A stretch of DNA of 64,000 nucleotides from Anthoceros angustus (Eukaryota > Plantae > Anthocerotophyta). Location of the stretch: positions 372,001 to 436,000 of the forward strand of contig MU008172.1 of NCBI GenBank assembly GCA_010909165.1. The letters are read 5' to 3'. The notes under the pieces were generated by a model. That model was not told the origin of the DNA, did not search any database, and saw only the letters and a program-made list of their open reading frames with translations. Shown here piece after piece: positions 19,347 to 35,777 of the stretch. The stretch's first letter is position 1. Every line of letters starts with the position of its first letter. Made by a program: the position numbers and the translations under genes.

Positions 19347-20639
19347 TCACTTGTCCGAGCGTGACCGTGACCGCGACCGTGCGGTGCTTGAAGGAAATGG
19401 TTGCAACAATCCCTCACGGAGACAGTAATCCAATGCCACAGCGGCGAAAGCAATGGTCACCAAACTTTCCCCTGCGTCAAGACAAGCTTGCAGCACCTCA
19501 CTTAAACCTTGGTCCGGGAAGCTCACCAAGGCCTGCGTTGTATCCACTTGCGCAATACCTTCACAATCGTCCACACTTCGTCAGGTATAGTCTGTTCAGG
19601 CGCACGACAGTCCAGACAGGAGTCGCTGGTGAGATTTGCTGACCTCGGACAAGGGCAAACGCGGCTGCAGCCCCGGCTTTGAGCTGAAAGTTGCCCAGAT
19701 CTCGCCTCACGATGTATCGGTAGCACACGCCAAAGAGAGCGCAGCTCAAAAACACGCCCGCTACCCCGACGATTCCGGACAGTCCTACATTCCTCTCCGA
19801 GAGAAGGAAAGGGAGGCTAGCGACGCTTCCCACCAGAGACGACACAGTAGCTGCCTTGCCTGACTCTATCCTTTCCGCATCCTCATCCACGGTAGCACTT
19901 TCCCACTTTCCGGAGATTTCCTCCGAGCTGTCGCCAACTCGAGCAGACACCAGAGCTATGCTAGCTTCATACAATTCCTGCTCAGCATCCGCTACTTCGT
20001 CTCGATACTTGGCCACCTGAATCACCACAAGGATGCGAGCAGGCTTAGAATCCACTTGGCCTCTCCACGTCCATAAGCAAATGCTACGACTCACGGGAGC
20101 TGAACACATTCAGCCCCAAACCGCAAAGAACATCCTGGAAACAGTGTTCATACGGCAGAATCTGCAGCAGCTTGTTCCTCAGCATAACGTTCTATTTCGG
20201 CCCGCAAGTCCGCAATCTCTTGCTCTCTCTTCTTATGCTTTTCCAGGTCCGACTGTAAGGACGAAACTCTTGCTGCTGCTGCCGCCAAGTCCTTGAGCAA
20301 TGCCTGTGACTCCTCATCATTCAACACCTTTCCTGCCTCGGACTCGACATCGAATCCTTCCTTCCCATCGTGCCATGTTTCCTGCTTTGCTACATTTTCG
20401 ACTCCATTCTCGTCCAGTGGTCCATTTTCCTTGCCGTTGCTGGCATAAGCACAGCCGTCACGCTTACTTCTCACAGCGGCCTCCTGCACCCAACTGATCC
20501 TAGGGAATGCGTGCCAGACCCATGTTGAGCCCACTGCAGGGGCCATAAAAACCTTGAAGCTGCCATGCACCACTCCCTGATGCTGTGGTCCGCATCTCTG
20601 GGAGAGGGCCAGGCGGGGTCCGCAACCCATGGCAGCCAT
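19347..20639 (-). CDS. Conserved plastid-targeted protein with coiled coil and membrane domain of cyanobacterial type; 3 exons
   Basis: Transit-peptide-like N-terminus; ERIESGKAA...SCALFGVCYRYIVRRDLGNFQLKAGAAAAFALVRG; last exon ends ALDYCLREGLLQPFP...DK*. Confidence 0.8.
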
Positions 20640-20774: not shown

Positions 20775-23700
20775 ATGCTGCAGCTGCCGGAGGCGGACGT
20801 AGTTTTGCTGCATTCCATAATCGATGATGAAAAGTTCCTGCCTGTGTTGCTGCGTTGGATTGATCCTCAGAGTCATGGACGGGCAGAGCTTTTACCCGAT
20901 CCGACCTCCCTAGAGACTGAGGTACTATCTAACGCTCATCCGCAAGTTGCGATAACAGACTATCCTTCTCTGCTGAAGGCATAGATGGCCTGTTACAGGT
21001 CCTGTTTTACTCACCAGTGAAGTCAACTTCTCTGGACACGGCTGGAGGTTGGAAGGACAAGTTGAATGGCACTTCTCCTCAGTCCTTTGCGTTGTCTTTC
21101 CTGCATTACATGCGGGCACAGCTTCAGCCATATTTTTCTAGTCCTGACCAAGCTTCTGGAGATGCACATTGTGGTTCCAGAAATAGGCTCAATGCAATGC
21201 TGAAGTCAGTTGGAATGCCAACCGAGGCCAACAGTACGCCGCGTACGAATGTTGGTCAGGTTGAACCCCGATTGGGAAAAACAGCTACCTTGGACGCCTC
21301 GTTCGAGCACAGGGAAGAACGAAGGAAGGCACTGCCCAGAACGAGCCTGTACGAAGATGAGTTCCCTGTGCTTGGGGCGCCATGCTCAACTACCATACAA
21401 CCAAGTGCACCGCAAGAATCAAAACAGGTTATTTGCATTCTCTCTGGGATCAGTTCACGTCTCCTCCTTTGTCAAGACTGACCATATGCATCGTCTTCTT
21501 TCAGAAACGGAGAGTCACCCCCACTCAAACGGCAGATCTGGCTGTGAGTAGCGCATTTGTTCTTGCAAAAGTGGAATCAGCTGCAGTCAATCATGGCCAC
21601 ATTCAGGCAAAACGCTTGGGACCCAGAAATCTAGAAGTGGACATGGGAATTCTTATGGAGCGATGTGACAAAAACCGAAAGCCAAGGCCACGGGAGAAAG
21701 TTCGACGTGGTAAAAAGAAGAACCAGGTATCTTCGGATGATGTCATACCATCTGAAATTCTGGGACCTTCAAATGATGAGTCTTCTCAGAGGCAACATGA
21801 TTCTCATAAAGTTCCCCCTTCAGCTGATGAGGGCTCATGTGCTGCACGAGATGCTGGCCCTGAAAATGCTGTAACGAGGCATGCAGAATCTGGCACCAAT
21901 CTCTTGTCGAGTATGCAGCTGTCTGGAGGCGATTTTCAACATGATGCCAGCAATGGTCCTTGTCGTTCCCTCCCAGGAAGGCTTCTCAGGTTGTCTACTG
22001 TGCATGCAAAACTCATGGTCTCGAGAATGGTTCCATCCTTGCTTGCGGAGCTTCAATTTCTGCTTCAGCTTCTATATATAGTAGGGACACCGGCTAGCAG
22101 TCACACCGAACAAATTGCTCACGGCAATATAGTGTTTCATGACTGCGGTGACTGTCCTCTATATGCGTGTGCCGTCCTGGAGCAAGCTGGGCCAATCGTG
22201 GAATATGGTACATACTGGTCGAATGTTGGCAGTTTGTGCTGCAATGTATCTTTTCGTAGCTGCATTCGTGATTTCCATGTTCCGTTGGTTGACAGACATT
22301 TTTGTTTCGTTGAATCAATGGTGATGTGCATGCAGTTGGTGAAGCCCTACTTGCTGCACTGGTTGATGAGCCTGCAATATCCAAGCATACACCAGAACTA
22401 CTTGCTCGTTTAAAGGCAGCCCTAATAGGCCAGCAGGCTGCATCACTACGAAGTGACAAAGCATATGAGCATGTTGTTCCGACTGATGCTGCTCACTCAT
22501 CACCCCGTATTCATCTGCGTCTGACGGCAATACCTGGATTGCCAGTCTCCCTGCCTTTCCAGTCAGCACGAGATTCCCGCCATAATTTTAAAACACCTGT
22601 ATGGAGATCTTCATGACAAAGCATTTCTTTGCTCTGAACTTGTGCTTTAAATGTTGCTGGTATAATCCAACCTCGTTGTGTGCAGAAGGAAATCAAGGTC
22701 TATAACAATCGTGAGCAATGTCGTGACCTCTTCTACTCTGTCATTCGAGAAGGTGCTGCAGCCTACAGTGCGTTTGGTTGTGGTGCACATGAGTCAGAGG
22801 AACAAGGCTACACAAAGATAGAAGAGTGCTCCAAGCAGTTTCTCAAAGTCTTGCTACTTGACAATTATTCATGGTTTGCAGGTTTTTTCTTCAGACCCTC
22901 AGTGATGAATTTTAGTTCATTGTCAGTCCATTGATGGATATTCGGTCTCACACATTATAGTTTAGACAGTGTAGAACAGTGTTTTAGATTTCAATACTGA
23001 ATAGTCTTCCTTACCTATGCCATCGTGGGGTTTGTTCAATGCACTGCAGAGTTATTTTTGGAGCAAGTTTTGCAGGTAGGCATTTCTTCTGTGAGGTTAC
23101 GGTTCTTAGATTGCTTACATCACAGCTTGTAGTGACTAACTCGATCGTGATCCTCCAGGTTTATATATGTGGAGATGCAGACCCAGTTGTAGTGGGTTTG
23201 GCCCATCAAGACCAAATGAAGCTGCAGAAGCTCCATGATAGGTTAACAGGAACAGCCGGTTGCACTGGTTCAGCCCGAAACCAAAAGCAGCCTTTCTCTG
23301 GCAATGGAAACGGTGATGTTCGGCTTCAATTGTCCCCAAGTAGTCCCTGGAGTCAAGTAAAGAATATTCACTCCACTAATTTAAAGAAGGGGAATAATCT
23401 TGCAAGTTTGCAAGCTATGCATGAGGAAAGAGCAGCTCTCTCCAAAGAGCATTTGGACTTTCAAGAGAACCTGAAGAGCAGGTTTTCGAGTTTTTTCCCT
23501 CAATTTCTGAGGGTTTACATATGGTTCTTGGAAGTCAATGACAGCCATCGGTTGAATGCCCATCTTATATGGAGCATAACACACAAGATCTCCAACTTAA
23601 CTGAGTAAGTTTTACAATCAGAAGGGGAAGAAAAATGGGTGATGGTTTTGTAACATCTAGCATGATCTGACGACTATCCATGCATGGAACTCTTTGTTTC

Positions 23701-26700
23701 AGGCTTTCACCTGATACTGGAAGTGCCACAGGTTTTACGCAAAGGGTCCTTGCATTAAAAGCTTTGGCTGGATTGCTAGGGTACGTGTAAAGCGCGGCAG
23801 CTTTAACAGGTTTCACTTTGTTAAAAACCTGACAAGACCTGTTCTGTCAGGTTCCTTGTATTCTCGCCAGGAGCTGGAACCCTGCCTCCAGTTCTTGGAC
23901 TTTCTTCGACGGCTTGGACTGTGTCCAGAAATACAATTCCTATTGATGTTGAAGGCACACTGTCTGCAGCAAAAGACAAGGGCATCATGCTTCTAGTGCT
24001 GCCCTGGGTTTTGGAATTTCTTCGTTTGACAAAGGTGTGGGTACTCTCATAAAACCTATAATTTTTGACAGTGGTAAGATTTGTCTTTTAGGTGCTGATC
24101 ATCAACAGCTGTTCAGGCTGATGAGCAAGTACATTATCAACCATATTTCCACAATGCTGTCTGTGCTTTGAGGGATGTGTATAGGCTTCCAATGCTTGAT
24201 CCTCTGCACCCGGATTTTGGGGTAATACAACAGTCTCCTGCCCATACCATGGGTTTTTTTTTCCAGTGCTCTTACGTTATTTGTGGCCTGACTGTGTAAG
24301 TGCCCGCGTAGGTTGGAAGTGTCTGCATCCTCGCTGCTTTGGACAGCTTTTTTGAGTACATGGACCTCCATTCATGCTTCGATAAGAGGATGTCCTCGAA
24401 GGATCAGGTGGCTGAACGCATTGCAAGAAAAGTGGTGCCAGGCGATAAGATTGTGGCAGGACAGCAGTTTATTGGACTTGACAAGGTTCCTGGTATTGTG
24501 GACAATACCTACATTAGGCATTGTTGCCCTATCCTAGTAGTAAGCCACCCACTGTTGTCTCTGTGTTACGTCACAATTGATAGCTGCTTCGTAGTCTGCA
24601 GTAGACAATCTCCAGCTGATGAAACGTGCAGGGCATGAGGATGGAAGTTCTCGAGGGCAAGAAGCGGAGGCAGAGAGTCCCTTCCAACTTGCAAAGTCCG
24701 GGGTCAGGGAGACAAATGCGGAAAATAACTCCTGTGCCTAGTCACAGTGAGTGGCAGCGTGAAAGGGCATCTCCACGGATTTCTGGGAAGAATCTGACTA
24801 CTTGCCATGTGGTGGCTGAACCGGAGACGTTTAAAATCAACCTTCAGGTGTGTGGCTCCTTCTGGTGTATCACAGCCGTCATGGTTCAATAGCATCCTGT
24901 TCCTTGACCAGGGAAGGAATTGGGTTGGATTCTATTGTCCTAGCTCAAATGATGTGTCCAGAGGGCAGTAGAATTGATCTATTGGTGACCCTTCTGTCGG
25001 ATATGTTGCAGAGAAGCTTTTTGGAACAGTGGCCGCAATTGCGGCGACTAGTTGATTTCATAGTTGATATTGTGGCAGTGAACGCTGCATCTGCTGCTGT
25101 CTCAAAGTTTGTACCACAAGTTTTGAAAGGTGCATTGAAGAAGCTTGACAGTACACTGTGTACAGAATCCAGAATGTCTGGAGTGGACTGCCTTAACACC
25201 ATCAGCAGCCCGGAATTGGCTGCGGAACAAGTAAACCCTTGTTGTCACCTTTCTACCAAATGGGATTATTTGCTTCATGGATTGTCTTTGAGAAATATTC
25301 TGAGTTTCTGCTCTTCACTGCCCCCAGATCATTGCATCAGCAATCTGTGAAGCGTTGCTTCCAGCTTCAGATTTCCTGCATAATTATGCAGCAGAGAAGA
25401 CATCTGAAGCTTTATCTCTTCTGGTCTATCCACACGAGGCTTCTTATGCTGTTGGGGTTGCTGCAGGTCTGATTCTCTTCCATCGCAGGGAACCTTGTTT
25501 GCTTGTGCATGTTTGCCACTTCTAGCACACGGCATTTCTGTGAGCCCAAGTTGGAAGGGTCTGGTGCCGTGGGACTTTCAGGCATGTCATGCTTGCTGAA
25601 AATGATGAATGTGAATTAACTTCTCTTGTTGTGATAGGGATCGCGGCCGAAACAGCAAGCATATCAGCATATCAAAAAGCTCTAGCAAGAATGTCAACAG
25701 AAATTAGGAGGCAGATAACTGAAGAAGTCCAACGCTGGAGAACACAACGAGCATTTTTGGATGTCAGGTCAAAGCTGGCTCTTCCTTTCACAGAGTCTAC
25801 CAGCCATATCGCTGGGCCAGAGGCTCCTGCAAGGGGTTCATTTAGGGATCCAGTAAACTCATCACAAGAAGAGATCAGGTCAGGAGATGACAGTCAGCAT
25901 GGTCTGCAAAGGTATCAGACTGTGCAGCTCAATGGAGAATTATCTACTCATCAAAGTCTCGAGCAGCTGACTATTGAAGTTCGAAAAAGAGACTGCAAGG
26001 TGGGACGAGCAATGAAGTTAGCTGCTCCTGTGAAGCGGCAGCTGGCCTTTGCTGGAAGCAGCAGTGACCTATCATACCAGGCCAATGGCAGTGCTTATGT
26101 TCCTCCAGGTAAAGAGCGAGAACTTCGGCTTGTGGACAATATCATTCAGGCATGTTCAAAGGCACGAAGTTGCATTACTTCAGGCCCTTGTGCAGATGAC
26201 GAAAGGAATTTGTTGCGCCAACGGTTGTCGGTTGTCTGCATGGCAATTGAGGCATTGCTGGCTCAAATGGGAGGAATTCCTGCTGGGGGCGCTGACGGAT
26301 TGGTGATTGAGCGAAGTGGAGTGGTTTTGCTTGAAAGATTGTCCTTGATTAGGAGTGCTGATGGTCCCCACCAGTCAACTCCTGGAAAGGTGAAAGTGGG
26401 TGGTAGCTTTACAGCTCCATTCAGGGTTGAATTGGGGCTCATACGACGATCTCTTGCCCTGGCTTTGAGACTGGCCTTTACATCTCCACAGCTGGCCTTT
26501 GGGTTGACACCAAGGACACCGATTCTGCAGTGCTCTTGTAACTCAAAGATGCAAGGAAATGCCGTCTGGAGAATGTTTATGGAATCCTCTCTGAATGCAA
26601 AACCATTTGCTGATGCAGATCGGAAACCAGAATCATCTCCTTATAAGCAGAACCACAATCCAATACAGGGGGTTGGGACATCAGACAGAGAATCTGCAGG

Positions 26701-27115
26701 GTGTGAAGAAGCTCTCCGGTTCTCATCGCAACTTGCAGGCCCCATGCTGGAACTGGTTGAGATGTGGAAGGCCTTGATACAGCAAAAGATCTGCTGTGTG
26801 AAGTTTGTCATGGGTGAACTCTTGGCCCCTTGGCGTTGGGCCTTGGCATTTCATATGGGTTCCTGGCAACCCGACCATTCATGGCTGGAAATACCGAAAC
26901 ACGGTCTCATTGGTGTAATGCTAAACATTATGGGAGAAAGTCTTGGCGTCGAAGAGGTTCAGGACGTTCCATGTCATTTTCTTCGGACCCTGTGTCTGGA
27001 GGTTGAAAGTGAAACAGCTGAAGAACAGGTAAGGAGGTCAGAGGTCAAGAACGTCGCTGCAGCTGTGGGTATGCATATCCTGATGTGGTGCACTCATTTT
27101 GGACGCCTCCATTGA
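20775..27115 (+). CDS. CDAN1: Codanin-1 (CDAN1 / Discs lost) homolog, multi-exon
   Basis: In-order motifs recalled from animal codanin-1: FALSFLHYMRAQ; EDEFPVLG...KRRVTPTQ; ELQFLLQLL; LPFQSARDSRHNF...REQCRDLFYSVIRE; KLQKLHDRL; LKALAGLLGFLVFSP; LVLPWVLEFL; GLDKVPGIVDNTYIRHCCPIL...MRKITPV...LQRSFLEQWPQLRRLVDFIVDIVAVN (Codanin-1_C). The junctions I spliced by hand stay in frame. Confidence 0.8.
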
Positions 27116-32513: not shown

Positions 32514-33302
32514 ATGGGGAGCAGCCAGCAGCAAGAGGAGGTGCAGACACGGAAAGCGGAGACAGAGGAGGAGGCTCGGCAACGGTTCCTCCTGGAGCTG
32601 GAATTTGTGCAGTGTCTGGCCAATCCGACCTACATCCACTGTATGAGAAGCGGCTGTGAATTCAGTGTCTTGCTTGGTACCACTGCATCCCCGTGCCTGA
32701 CATGCGGCAAGGTCTTCACTGGCGTGACAGATTTAGCTCAGCATCGGTATTTCGATGACGAGGCGTTTGTAAATTACCTCAAGTACCTACTATATTTCCA
32801 GCGGCCCGAGTATGCCCAGTTCATCGTGTGAGTGACGCTCTTGGAAACCCTAGCTGTATGCCATAGGATGGTTGGTTAGGATGGCGGCGACCTCACCTCC
32901 TGCCCCTCCATGTGTCCAAATCGACAGGTACCCGCACACGCTCTACTTCCTTGTTCAACTGCAAAACCCGAATTTTCGAAGCGCAATGGCGCATACTGGA
33001 AACAAGGTCTGCTCTGCTTCCAGCATCTGCTATGGCTAAGGCTGTTGCTGCTTGTCAGCGTGGGACCTGTAGGGGACGCTTATCCACATCCGTGACTGGG
33101 CTGCCCGCAGGAAGTAGCTCATAGGCAGCAATTCTACTTTTGGAAGCACTACCGCAACAACAGGCTGAAGCACGTCCTGCCCCGGCCCCTCCCCGAAGAA
33201 ACTCCCGCACCTCCTGCACAGCCCGCGCCAGCGCCTGTCAAGGTGGAACCGCCACCCCGACCTGCCGTGGGCGGACGCAGGAAGCGCAAACACAACGGCT
33301 AG
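32514..33302 (+). CDS. MED31: Mediator subunit 31 (SOH1); 4 exons
   Basis: RFLLELEFVQCLANPTYIH|YLAQHRYFDDEAFVNYLKYL...YPHTLYFL...HRQQFYFWKHYRNNRLKH. Confidence 0.95.
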
Positions 33303-35777
33303 CTCCCCTGGCCCCGCGCCTCTCATCATCTGAAAACGCTAGCATCCCAGTCGAATGACCAGTTGGCCTGCATCGCGGCCGCTTCGTGTCGCGGGTAGCG
33401 ACGCATGCCGCCATCAAGTGCCGAGTCCCCACGCGGGTGTAGGTACATACTCGGGAGTGGACACGGCTCTTTTGCGTAGACGAAGATTGGGATCCAGATT
33501 CCAGCTTCGTTCCTTGACTGGATGCTGCAGTGCGGAAAGTTATCACACGCTGTATGACAGCCACATCATCTTCCAAAGTGCACGTAAGTATTTTGTATAG
33601 GTAGATTTTTGCAAACCCCGATGAGACGGAGAAGCTTTGATTTTTTTTTTTCTCAGACCATTTAGGATTTTATACTGTGTTCAGGACTTTAGCTAAGATT
33701 AGGAGGTAGTAAGTGATAACATTATGATTATGATAATGGGGGCTTTTATAGGTGGTCTCGAAGGGGTGTGTCCTTCTGCTAGTCTAGTTCACTAACTATA
33801 CTAACTGCTAGGTTTGCCTGACTGACCAGCACGGTACAGAACCAACGTGGTCTGCTATTATTTCTAACTCTCCCTCTCAGATGGTGCGAGAACAGGAAAG
33901 AGGCTGGGAAGCGTAGAGAGAAGCCGCCCATACAGTAATGGGAAGTGATGAAAACAAATCTTCTTCACAATTTCTTGTCTAAGGATCACAAAGAAAGGTG
34001 TTGGTTAGTGGGGTACGCTCTCAAGCATACTGGTACACTTGAAGAATTTCATTTGCAGTTCAAGAAGGCTATGCTCAAAATACCAGACCTAGAGGAGGAG
34101 GGAAAGCTCGCCAAGTGCTTGACGCCGTCAAGCAGGAGTATAAGCTCAGCATTAAGCAACAAGTAACAAGCATTAAGTATTGCACCACTGTTGAAGAGGT
34201 AATGCAGGCTGCGATGGACATCGAGAATTATGGAGTCAAGCCGGCTAGATGTGCAATTGTGACAACTCAACAGTTTGGGCAAGCCCAAGGACTGCAAGGT
34301 GTGTTTCACAGGCAATACCAAGCTCAAGGAGCCAAGTACAACCCTTCTCACACTTTGAAGCATAGAGGTCCAGAGCCTGCAGCTAGATCCACAGCACATA
34401 CTAGTCAGCAAGTTGAGCTCAAGCCTATCGAATTTAGACAGCATGATGAAAAGGAGAAGAAGGAATAGAAGGCAAAAGGCTTGTGTTTTATTTAATTTGC
34501 TTGATTACATTTCCGCACCTCCTGCACAGCCCGCGCCAGCTCCTGTCAAGGTGGAACCGCCACCCGACCTGCCGTGGGCGGACGCAGGAAGCGCAAACAC
34601 AACGGCTAGCTCCCTGGCCCCGCCTCTCATCATCTGAAAACGCTAGCATCCCAGTCGAATGACCAGTTGGCCTGCATCGCGGCCGCTTCGTGTCGCAGGT
34701 AGCGACGCATGCCGCCATCAAGTGCCGAGTCCCCACGCGGGTGTAGGTACATACTCGGGAGTGGACACGGCTCTTTTGCGTAGACGAAGATTGGGATCCA
34801 GATTCCAGCTTCGTTCCTTGACTGGATGCTGCAGTGCGGAAAGTTATCACACGCTGTATGACAGCCACATCATCTTCAAAGTGCACGTAAGTATTTTGTA
34901 TAGGTAGATTTTTTTGCAAACCCCGATGAGACGGAGAAGCTTTGATTTTTTTTCTCAGACCATTTAGGATTTTATACTGTTCAGGACTTTAGCTAAGATT
35001 AGGAGGTAGTAAGTGATAACATTATGATTATGATAATGGGGCTTTTATAGGTGGTCTCGAAGGGGTGTCCTTCCGCTAGTCTAGTTCACTAACTATACTA
35101 ACGCTAGGTTTGCCCCGACCAGACGCGATGCAGAACGCGTGATCGCTATTATTTCTAACTCTCCTCTCGGATGGTGCGAGAGCAGAAAGAGGCTGGAAGC
35201 GTGAGAAGCCGCCCATACAGAATGGGAAGTGATGAAAACAAATCTTCTTCACAATTTCTAAGGATCACAAAGAAAGGTGTTGGTTAGTGGGCCTCAAGCA
35301 TCGGTACACTTGAAGAATTTCATTTGCAGTTCAAGAAGGCTATGCTCAAAATACCAGACCTAGAGGAGGAGGGAAAGCTCGCCAAGTGCTTGACGCCGTC
35401 AAGCAGGAGTATAAGCTCAGCATTAAGCAACAAGTAACAAGCATTAAGTATTGCACCACTGTTGAAGAGGTAATGCAGGCTGCGATGGACATCGAGAATT
35501 ATGGAGTCAAGCCGGCTAGATGTGCAATTGTGACAACTCAACAGTTTGCAAGCCAAGGCAAGGTGTGTTCAGGCAATACCAAGCTCAAGGAGCCAAGTAC
35601 AACCCTTCTCACACTTTGAAGCATAGAGGTCCAGAGCCTGCAGCTAGATCCACAGCACATACTAGTCAGCAAGTTGAGCTCAAGCCTATCGAATTTAGAC
35701 AGCATGATGAAAAGGAGAAGAAGGAATAGAAGGCAAAAGGCTTGTGTTTTATTTAATTTGCTTCTGATTACATTTCC
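33205..35777. repeat. ~1.3-kb tandem duplication (33205-34512 and 34513-35777) covering the MED31 3' end and a gag relic
   Basis: Near-identical copies that differ mainly by short deletions. Confidence 0.9.

Follow-up and report, generated by a model that had tools for sequence, protein, structure and literature searches.

A Codanin-1 homolog in Anthoceros angustus and its putative ASF1-docking motifs

Work on Codanin-1, which restrains the histone chaperone ASF1, has treated it as a protein of animals and as a gene of human disease; what, then, is the long spliced gene with Codanin-like blocks that is found in the genome of Anthoceros angustus (Anthocerotophyta), and what might it do there? 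The gene occupies positions 20775-27115 on the forward strand of a stretch of 64,000 nucleotides (assembly GCA_010909165.1, contig MU008172.1, positions 372,001 to 436,000), hereafter the window, to which all coordinates below refer. A first-pass annotation, made from the letters of the window, had proposed that this is an intact-looking homolog of Codanin-1 (CDAN1) that keeps the ASF1-binding B-domain motifs, and that seed-free plants may retain a histone-supply control module undescribed in plants. Our results indicate that the gene encodes a protein of ~1618 amino acids laid out as in animals: MIF4G1, split by a long flexible loop, is followed by MIF4G2, by the region of Codanin-1_C and the three-helix coiled coil, and by a helical bundle at the C-terminus. 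The gene is almost certainly a CDAN1 ortholog. Taken as a whole, the data are best explained by a native, vertically inherited CDAN1 ortholog that docks ASF1 as in human cells, which we consider probable. What is new is the presence of an expressed ortholog in this lineage, together with the invariance of both B-domain motifs.

The Pfam, PDB, and profile comparisons of the window gene were run exon by exon. Against a plant profile of 1580 positions built from four full-length plant proteins (A2), the 15 exons of the window gene match in strict order at positions 9-1540, and when this profile was compared with 177,635 PDB sequences, only human Codanin-1 was matched (9cvc, expect value (E) 2.5e-22; 9imz, E 8e-22). 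The match consists of four collinear blocks extending from the N-terminal helices to approximately human residue 993, and the part of MIF4G1 encoded by exon 3 aligns to human CDAN1 residues 300-412. The fold points in the same direction. When the MIF4G region was modeled for the Diphasiastrum ortholog with window exons 3, 4, 5, and 7 in the alignment (pLDDT, the predicted value of the local distance difference test, 62.5; predicted template modeling score (pTM) 0.42), the CDAN1 chains 9cvc_A, 9cvc_B, and 9imz_A ranked first in Foldseek, with a probability of 0.87-0.99 overall and of 0.98-0.99 for the top matches, and CDAN1 chains were also on top in VIA-align (Z 12.4 and 10.1, 22-24% identity), where model residues 2-258 superpose on human residues 294-515. 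The next structural neighbor after CDAN1, in third place, was the MIF4G domain of CNOT1 (VIA-align, Z 8.8). The sole relevant Pfam match of the window gene is that of exon 13 to Codanin-1_C (PF15296; profile length 121, cut-off 27 bits), with 25.5 bits and an E of 1.5e-5 over profile positions 71-119. This score is just under the cut-off because Codanin-1_C is split over exons 11-13 and only positions 71-119 lie in exon 13. The search for this domain by hidden Markov model succeeds for the orthologs but falls short for the window exon taken alone: the full-length proteins of Diphasiastrum complanatum, Cryptomeria japonica, Ceratopteris richardii, and Adiantum capillus-veneris, four collinear orthologs that were scanned, score 42-51 bits each. 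The Taxus, Ginkgo, and Physcomitrium proteins retrieved by word searches carry Codanin-1_C in precomputed annotation. Thus, the homology to Codanin-1 first read from the sequence is borne out by Pfam, by the exclusive PDB profile match, and by the fold match.

The last ~330 residues of the protein form an all-alpha bundle, made of helices only, in an AlphaFold2 model of 26084-27112 (pLDDT 72.6, pTM 0.74), and this bundle holds strongly conserved plant blocks, such as ELLAPWRWALA and KHGLIGV. Fold searches with the bundle (ESM Atlas, Foldseek against the PDB, and a VIA wide search) gave no specific match, only generic HEAT/TOG/MA3-like folds with Z 8 or less, and a language-model atlas search with the last exon returned only generic ARM/HEAT-like leads of low recognition. 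An exhaustive HMMER search with a last-exon profile found 14 clusters among 1.84 billion representatives, the named matches being all non-flowering land plants with no animal Codanin-1 among them, and it therefore appears that the C-terminal bundle has diverged beyond sequence recognition between plants and animals. The bundle of the human protein that binds CDIN1 (residues 1023-1202) has no solved structure (PMC13463051).

Two cryo-electron microscopy studies have defined four ASF1-binding elements in human Codanin-1 (PMC11911400, PMC11880193). The N-terminal B-domain (BD-N) comprises residues 193-203, including R195/R196, followed by an extension at 204-216, and lies inside the loop that splits MIF4G1 (PMC11911400), while the C-terminal B-domain (BD-C) comprises residues 820-833, of which R825/K826 contact D58/D37 of ASF1A (PMC11911400, PMC11880193). 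The remaining two are H3-mimic helices, HMH-N at residues 247-264 and HMH-C at residues 539-550, the latter with R541, L545, R548, and L549 (PMC11911400, PMC11880193). The corresponding stretches of the window gene are as follows:

21505-21522, forward strand: KRRVTP, the first six codons of exon 3; candidate N-terminal B-domain (equivalent of BD-N, or BDA2).
24719-24733, forward strand: RKITP, in exon 12; C-terminal B-domain (BD-C, or BDA1).
21631-21666, forward strand: LEVDMGILMERC, in exon 3; a short block conserved in plants and candidate HMH-N.
23219-23245, forward strand: KLQKLHDRL, in exon 7; candidate H3-mimic helix HMH-C.

In the hidden Markov model alignment of the plant profile with the PDB, each residue of the plant RKITP column falls on its counterpart in the human ..MRKITP.. 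(R825/K826), and RKITP is invariant in 12 of 12 plant sequences despite variable flanks; at the level of sequence, this shows that the C-terminal B-domain motif RKITP is conserved in its human form. For the N-terminal motif, RRV[N/T]PT is likewise invariant in 12 of 12 plant sequences, from moss to gymnosperm, both motifs standing in linkers that vary elsewhere, and in the plant sequences it is followed by a conserved VDSAF[V/I]LA extension and, ~40 residues on, by a conserved K-x-DM-x2-LM-x2-C block. The loop that holds the motif runs from the N-terminal helices to the point where MIF4G1 resumes, which is also the place of the N-terminal B-domain in the human protein, and the plant order and spacing of B-domain, extension, and short conserved block agree with human residues 193-203, 204-216, and 247-264 (PMC11911400). 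On the strength of motif type, position, and conservation, RRVTP is a candidate equivalent of human BD-N. The details given in the first-pass annotation proved accurate, in that KRRVTP follows DEFPVLG and comes directly after an intron (21428-21504, 77 nucleotides; the 5' end had been given as 21429, one base off) and a second motif, RKITP, is present in the Codanin-1_C region. Its broader claim that the B-domain motifs are kept stands insofar as RKITP aligns exactly to human BD-C and RRVTP is plant-invariant and in the equivalent loop, but sub-profiles of this loop have no match to human CDAN1 at E up to 10. As for the helices, KLQ[KR]LHDR[LMI] is invariant in 11 plant sequences, and the K/R-x3-L-x2-R-L spacing of KLQKLHDRL is that of human R541/L545/R548/L549 (PMC11880193). 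It lies 14-24 residues past the model segment that superposes on human 294-515, approximately where residues 539-550 would fall. Both LEVDMGILMERC and KLQKLHDRL are candidates only for H3-mimic helices.

By analogy with human cells, the loop motif RRVTP and, after MIF4G2, RKITP would act as two B-domain strands through which the plant protein docks the H3-H4 chaperone ASF1, the paired basic residues of both motifs binding its conserved acidic patch. The H3-binding face of ASF1 may in addition be occupied by one or two helices, for which LEVDMGILMERC and KLQKLHDRL are the candidates. ASF1 would in this way be held back from HIRA and CAF-1, and histone supply would be buffered; as for the C-terminal bundle, its partner is probably a protein such as a CDIN1-type nuclease. 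We lean toward docking of ASF1 through two B-domain strands, and its withholding from HIRA and CAF-1, as the function of the protein. The plant partners of ASF1 are the same, as immunoprecipitation followed by mass spectrometry of Arabidopsis ASF1 recovered the HIRA complex and TOUSLED (bioRxiv 10.1101/2022.09.12.507673). Several observations weigh against this interpretation. Of the ASF1-binding elements, BD-C alone is statistically aligned to human, and in PDB searches, the sub-profiles of the BD-N/HMH-N loop (A3), the KLQRLHDRL region (A6), and the NNREQCRD region (A4) had no human CDAN1 match at E up to 10, A4 matching nothing in the PDB at all. The MIF4G-region model is of low confidence by both of its scores, and the Codanin-1_C score of the window itself, from exon 13 alone, is slightly below the cut-off. 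The C-terminal bundle is without detectable similarity to the human CDIN1-binding bundle, as the alignment ends at approximately human residue 993 and the fold searches are non-specific. Finally, B-domain-like sequences without detectable ASF1 binding have been reported in Tetrahymena Cac2 and Hir1 (PMC10080907).

With the last-exon profile and word searches, the plant Codanin-1 family was found in moss, lycophyte, ferns, and three gymnosperms (Cryptomeria, Taxus, and Ginkgo), the full-length matches of the last-exon profile being the four orthologs scanned above. The limit to seed-free plants proposed in the first-pass annotation is therefore wrong; a loss of the gene in the flowering plants fits better than a seed-free restriction. 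Its remark that no Arabidopsis ortholog has been characterized agrees with the searches, as no angiosperm homolog was found in the last-exon HMMER search or in word searches, the latter needing shared 5-residue words and being no proof of absence. These word searches, made with a gymnosperm Codanin-1_C region and with an 8-sequence profile, returned plant members only, with no animals, algae, or angiosperms. A counterpart of the window gene is present on a 9.4-kilobase Logan contig (L001), reached via one match in a word search with the last exon, which carries the Codanin-1 gene with every exon conserved and collinear and with the start codon conserved as well. A tree was built from the C-terminal bundle; it groups the ferns, the gymnosperms, the mosses, and the lycophyte, and places the window and L001 apart as a fully supported pair. 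Since this tree follows plant phylogeny, it argues for vertical descent. Many short ENA, JGI, and Logan 'proteins' (P0006-P0012, P0036, and P0039), their sources being unannotated assemblies or samples from the environment, each represent one exon of a gene of this family, called by bacterial gene finders; in the tree, P0036 and P0007 fall with the mosses and P0039 and P0008 with the gymnosperms. A phylogenetic survey of CDAN1 by Swickley et al. reported it only in animals, oomycetes, and diatoms, with plants unmentioned (PMC7092493), and our literature search found no publication on a plant Codanin-1. UniProt, however, automatically names several plant members 'Codanin-1 C-terminal domain-containing protein', which places the domain in plants already on record.

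The integrity of the gene was judged from a three-frame forward translation, in which splice sites were first placed by eye and then set by transcript contigs. The gene has 15 exons on the forward strand, with all introns GT..AG, continuous phases, and a coding sequence of 4857 nucleotides (1618 codons) in which the terminal TGA at 27113-27115 is the only stop. The spliced form is present in transcript contigs of one run from the same species (organism A, 0 mismatches, 100% identical) and of three runs from organisms B and C, two relatives with 90-95% identity, and the joints are all GT..AG. The runs are taken to be RNA, which is a guess; their contigs skip every intron, unlike genomic DNA. 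An intact-looking spliced gene, as first described, is thus confirmed, and the transcript contigs from three species add its expression. The exons are the following:

20775-20921, forward strand: exon 1, opening with the start codon and encoding the N-terminal helix of the split MIF4G1 (DVVLLHSII..LPVLLRW); plant profile positions 9-42, joint in transcripts.
20999-21427, forward strand: exon 2, FALSFLHYMRAQ helix and then the start of the long low-conservation loop; the exon ends with DEFPVLG (21356-21376).
21505-22207, forward strand: exon 3, B-domain motif, extension, short block LEVDMGILMERC, and MIF4G1 resumption LLRLSTVHAKLMVSRMVPSLLAELQFLLQLL; plant profile positions 176-388, 126 bits.
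22336-22598, forward strand: exon 4, helical MIF4G region (..PFQSARDSRHNFKT); supported by L001, plant profile, and transcripts.
22686-22881, forward strand: exon 5, NNREQCRD block at 22704-22727; supported by L001, plant profile, and transcripts.
23050-23075, forward strand: exon 6, 26-nucleotide micro-exon encoding (E)LFLEQVLQ; AG/GT flanks, correct phase.
23159-23604, forward strand: exon 7, KLQKLHDRL (23219-23245) and then the FLEVNDSHRLN block.
23703-23780, 23851-24034, 24117-24221, and 24312-24539, forward strand: exons 8-11, remainder of MIF4G2 and start of the Codanin-1_C region (..GIVDNTYIRHCCPILV).
24632-24847, forward strand: exon 12, RKITP (24719-24733), the C-terminal B-domain.
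25012-25230, forward strand: exon 13, coding for the C-terminal portion of Codanin-1_C (Pfam) and for helix one of the three that form the coiled-coil domain; plant profile 73 bits.
25328-25466, forward strand: exon 14, second coiled-coil helix; supported by L001, plant profile, and transcripts, with the human alignment running on to ~residue 993.
25638-27115, forward strand: exon 15, third coiled-coil helix, linker, and C-terminal all-alpha bundle from ~26114 to the stop.

A weak collinear match in the exon 1 region puts the plant N-terminus on human CDAN1 residues ~2-65, and the DEFPVLG site of exon 2 belongs to a block, Y-x-[DE]-[FY]-P-x-L, that plant alignment A2 shows to be conserved. Exons 8-11 have collinear plant-profile matches at positions 701-904, with joints in transcripts and with human residues ~574-708 and ~783 onward aligned. 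The linker of exon 15 is about 150 amino acids long (residues 39-158 of the exon) and sparsely conserved. For the micro-exon, L001 shows conservation, and its letters stand between the flanking exons in transcripts of organisms B and C; an exon of 26 nucleotides could easily be overlooked by automatic gene callers. At intron 3 of organism B, a contig in run X3 joins 22204 to 22321, and another contig, in X2, joins to 22335. The X3 joint could reflect an alternative acceptor ~14 nucleotides upstream, with a frameshift as the consequence, or else be an artifact of alignment at 90-95% identity. Upstream, at 19561-20639 on the reverse strand, lies a divergent neighbor gene, the protein product of which has a conserved stretch of coiled coil (..LLKDLAAAAARVSSLQSDLEKHKKREQEIADLRAEIERYAEEQAAADS..). 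This gene also adjoins the Codanin-1 gene in L001 (1953-2489), upstream and on the opposite strand, and the local gene order is thus common to both. Elsewhere in the window, two open reading frames on the reverse strand, at 33238-33576 and 34488-34919, share a near-identical stretch of ~100 amino acids (..VAVIQRVITFRTAASSQGTKLESGSQSSSTQKSRVH..) and lie ~1.2 kilobases apart, which suggests a repeated element.

Alternative explanations for the gene differ in how well they survive these data. The main rival, or complement, to ASF1 docking is that the gene is a true CDAN1 ortholog whose task in plants is to serve as a scaffold or regulator of a CDIN1-type RNA nuclease, comparable to CNOT1 with its deadenylases, with ASF1 docking secondary or lost and RRVTP and RKITP serving some other partner. 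Human CDAN1 resembles CNOT1, the MIF4G domain of which is the next structural neighbor after CDAN1 here, CDIN1-Codanin-1 has been reported as an RNA nuclease complex (PMC7092493, PMC13463051), and CDIN1 predates CDAN1 and has a wider distribution (PMC7092493); the strongly conserved ELLAPWRWALA and KHGLIGV blocks of the plant C-terminal bundle would also be in keeping with such a role. While a B-domain-like sequence is no guarantee of detectable ASF1 binding (PMC10080907), the plant RKITP is the human RKITP at the ASF1-contact site in two cryo-electron microscopy structures (PMC11911400, PMC11880193), and two B-domain-type motifs have stayed invariant over ~450 million years of plant evolution. 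Moreover, the two functions are compatible in human cells and not mutually exclusive. We consider nuclease scaffolding at the expense of ASF1 docking unlikely, and ASF1 docking remains the preferred function. It is far less likely still that the protein is a generic MIF4G/HEAT scaffold and no ortholog, resembling Codanin-1 only by fold and low-complexity motifs. The lack of PDB matches for single exons by phmmer, the Pfam match of the window under the cut-off, and the purely generic helical repeats matched by the C-terminal bundle would all fit such a scaffold, but they stand against Codanin-1_C scores of 42-51 bits in collinear orthologs and CDAN1 as the top structural neighbor at 22-24% identity, and the exclusive match to human CDAN1 in four collinear blocks (E 2.5e-22) leads us to reject it. 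A decaying or silent relic, a pseudogene, or foreign, transferred, or contaminant DNA, for which nothing speaks beyond the apparent absence of the family from angiosperms, is the least probable of all and is rejected given the reading frame intact over 15 exons, the spliced transcripts in three species, the short plant-type GT-AG introns, the neighbor gene common with L001, and a gene tree that follows plant phylogeny.

An expressed ortholog across non-flowering land plants moves the origin of Codanin-1 further back, and we marginally favor the view that restraint of ASF1 by CDAN1 did not arise in animals but is an ancient eukaryotic device that land plants inherited by vertical descent, that kept both B-domains unchanged from moss to gymnosperm, and that the flowering-plant lineage then lost. 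The apparent absence from angiosperms would explain why Arabidopsis-based plant chromatin work never met Codanin-1. If this view is correct, non-flowering models such as Physcomitrium, hornworts, and ferns would offer a tractable system for a form of histone-supply control that is invisible in Arabidopsis, and the invariant putative docking motifs supply concrete residues for mutation. Plant Codanin-1 is not a new kind of system, as databases flag the domain in plants already.

Among known systems, CNOT1, the scaffold of CCR4-NOT, is similar in its layout of MIF4G, three-helix bundle, and MA3-like region (PMC7092493, PMC11911400), but it gave no sequence-level match and lacks both Codanin-1_C and B-domains. 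The B-domains of HIRA and CAF-1 p60 (CHAF1B) share with the plant motifs a short strand with two consecutive basic residues, I or V, any residue, and P, and both human CDAN1 B-domains bind D37/D58 of ASF1 canonically (PMC11911400). The plant BD-N loop sub-profile had no match to HIRA or CHAF1B chains in the PDB, and the settings differ, as the B-domains of HIRA and CHAF1B are parts of WD40 chaperones to which ASF1 passes histones, whereas the CDAN1 motif sequesters ASF1. Much closer are the uncharacterized plant database entries of Physcomitrium patens, Ceratopteris richardii, Adiantum capillus-veneris, and Taxus chinensis, auto-named by UniProt as above, together with Cryptomeria japonica LOC131035393, Diphasiastrum complanatum O6H91_02G047900, and Ginkgo Gb_07520. 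These belong to the same family, with the same architecture and invariant motifs, and the window exons map to them end to end, but their last-exon identity to the window is 19-30%, compared with 46% for L001, and the window and L001 are a well-supported clade of their own, which lies outside the mosses, the lycophyte, the ferns, and the gymnosperms. Human Codanin-1 (PDB 9CVC and 9IMZ) is shorter than the plant protein (1227 versus ~1618 amino acids), in which the variable linkers are longer. Its H3-mimic helices are not alignable to the plant candidates, the strongly conserved plant block NNREQCRD..ENYPWF..GETDP is without a PDB match when searched alone by sequence, and the plant C-terminal bundle is without a detectable match to the human CDIN1-binding HEAT bundle. 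Human Codanin-1 is nevertheless collinear with the plant protein over the N-terminal helices, MIF4G1, MIF4G2, Codanin-1_C, and the coiled coil to ~residue 993, and it is the top structural neighbor of the plant MIF4G-region model. The two proteins also appear to share a long MIF4G1-splitting loop with an RR[IV]xP-type motif followed by a conserved extension, and RKITP at BD-C is identical in both.

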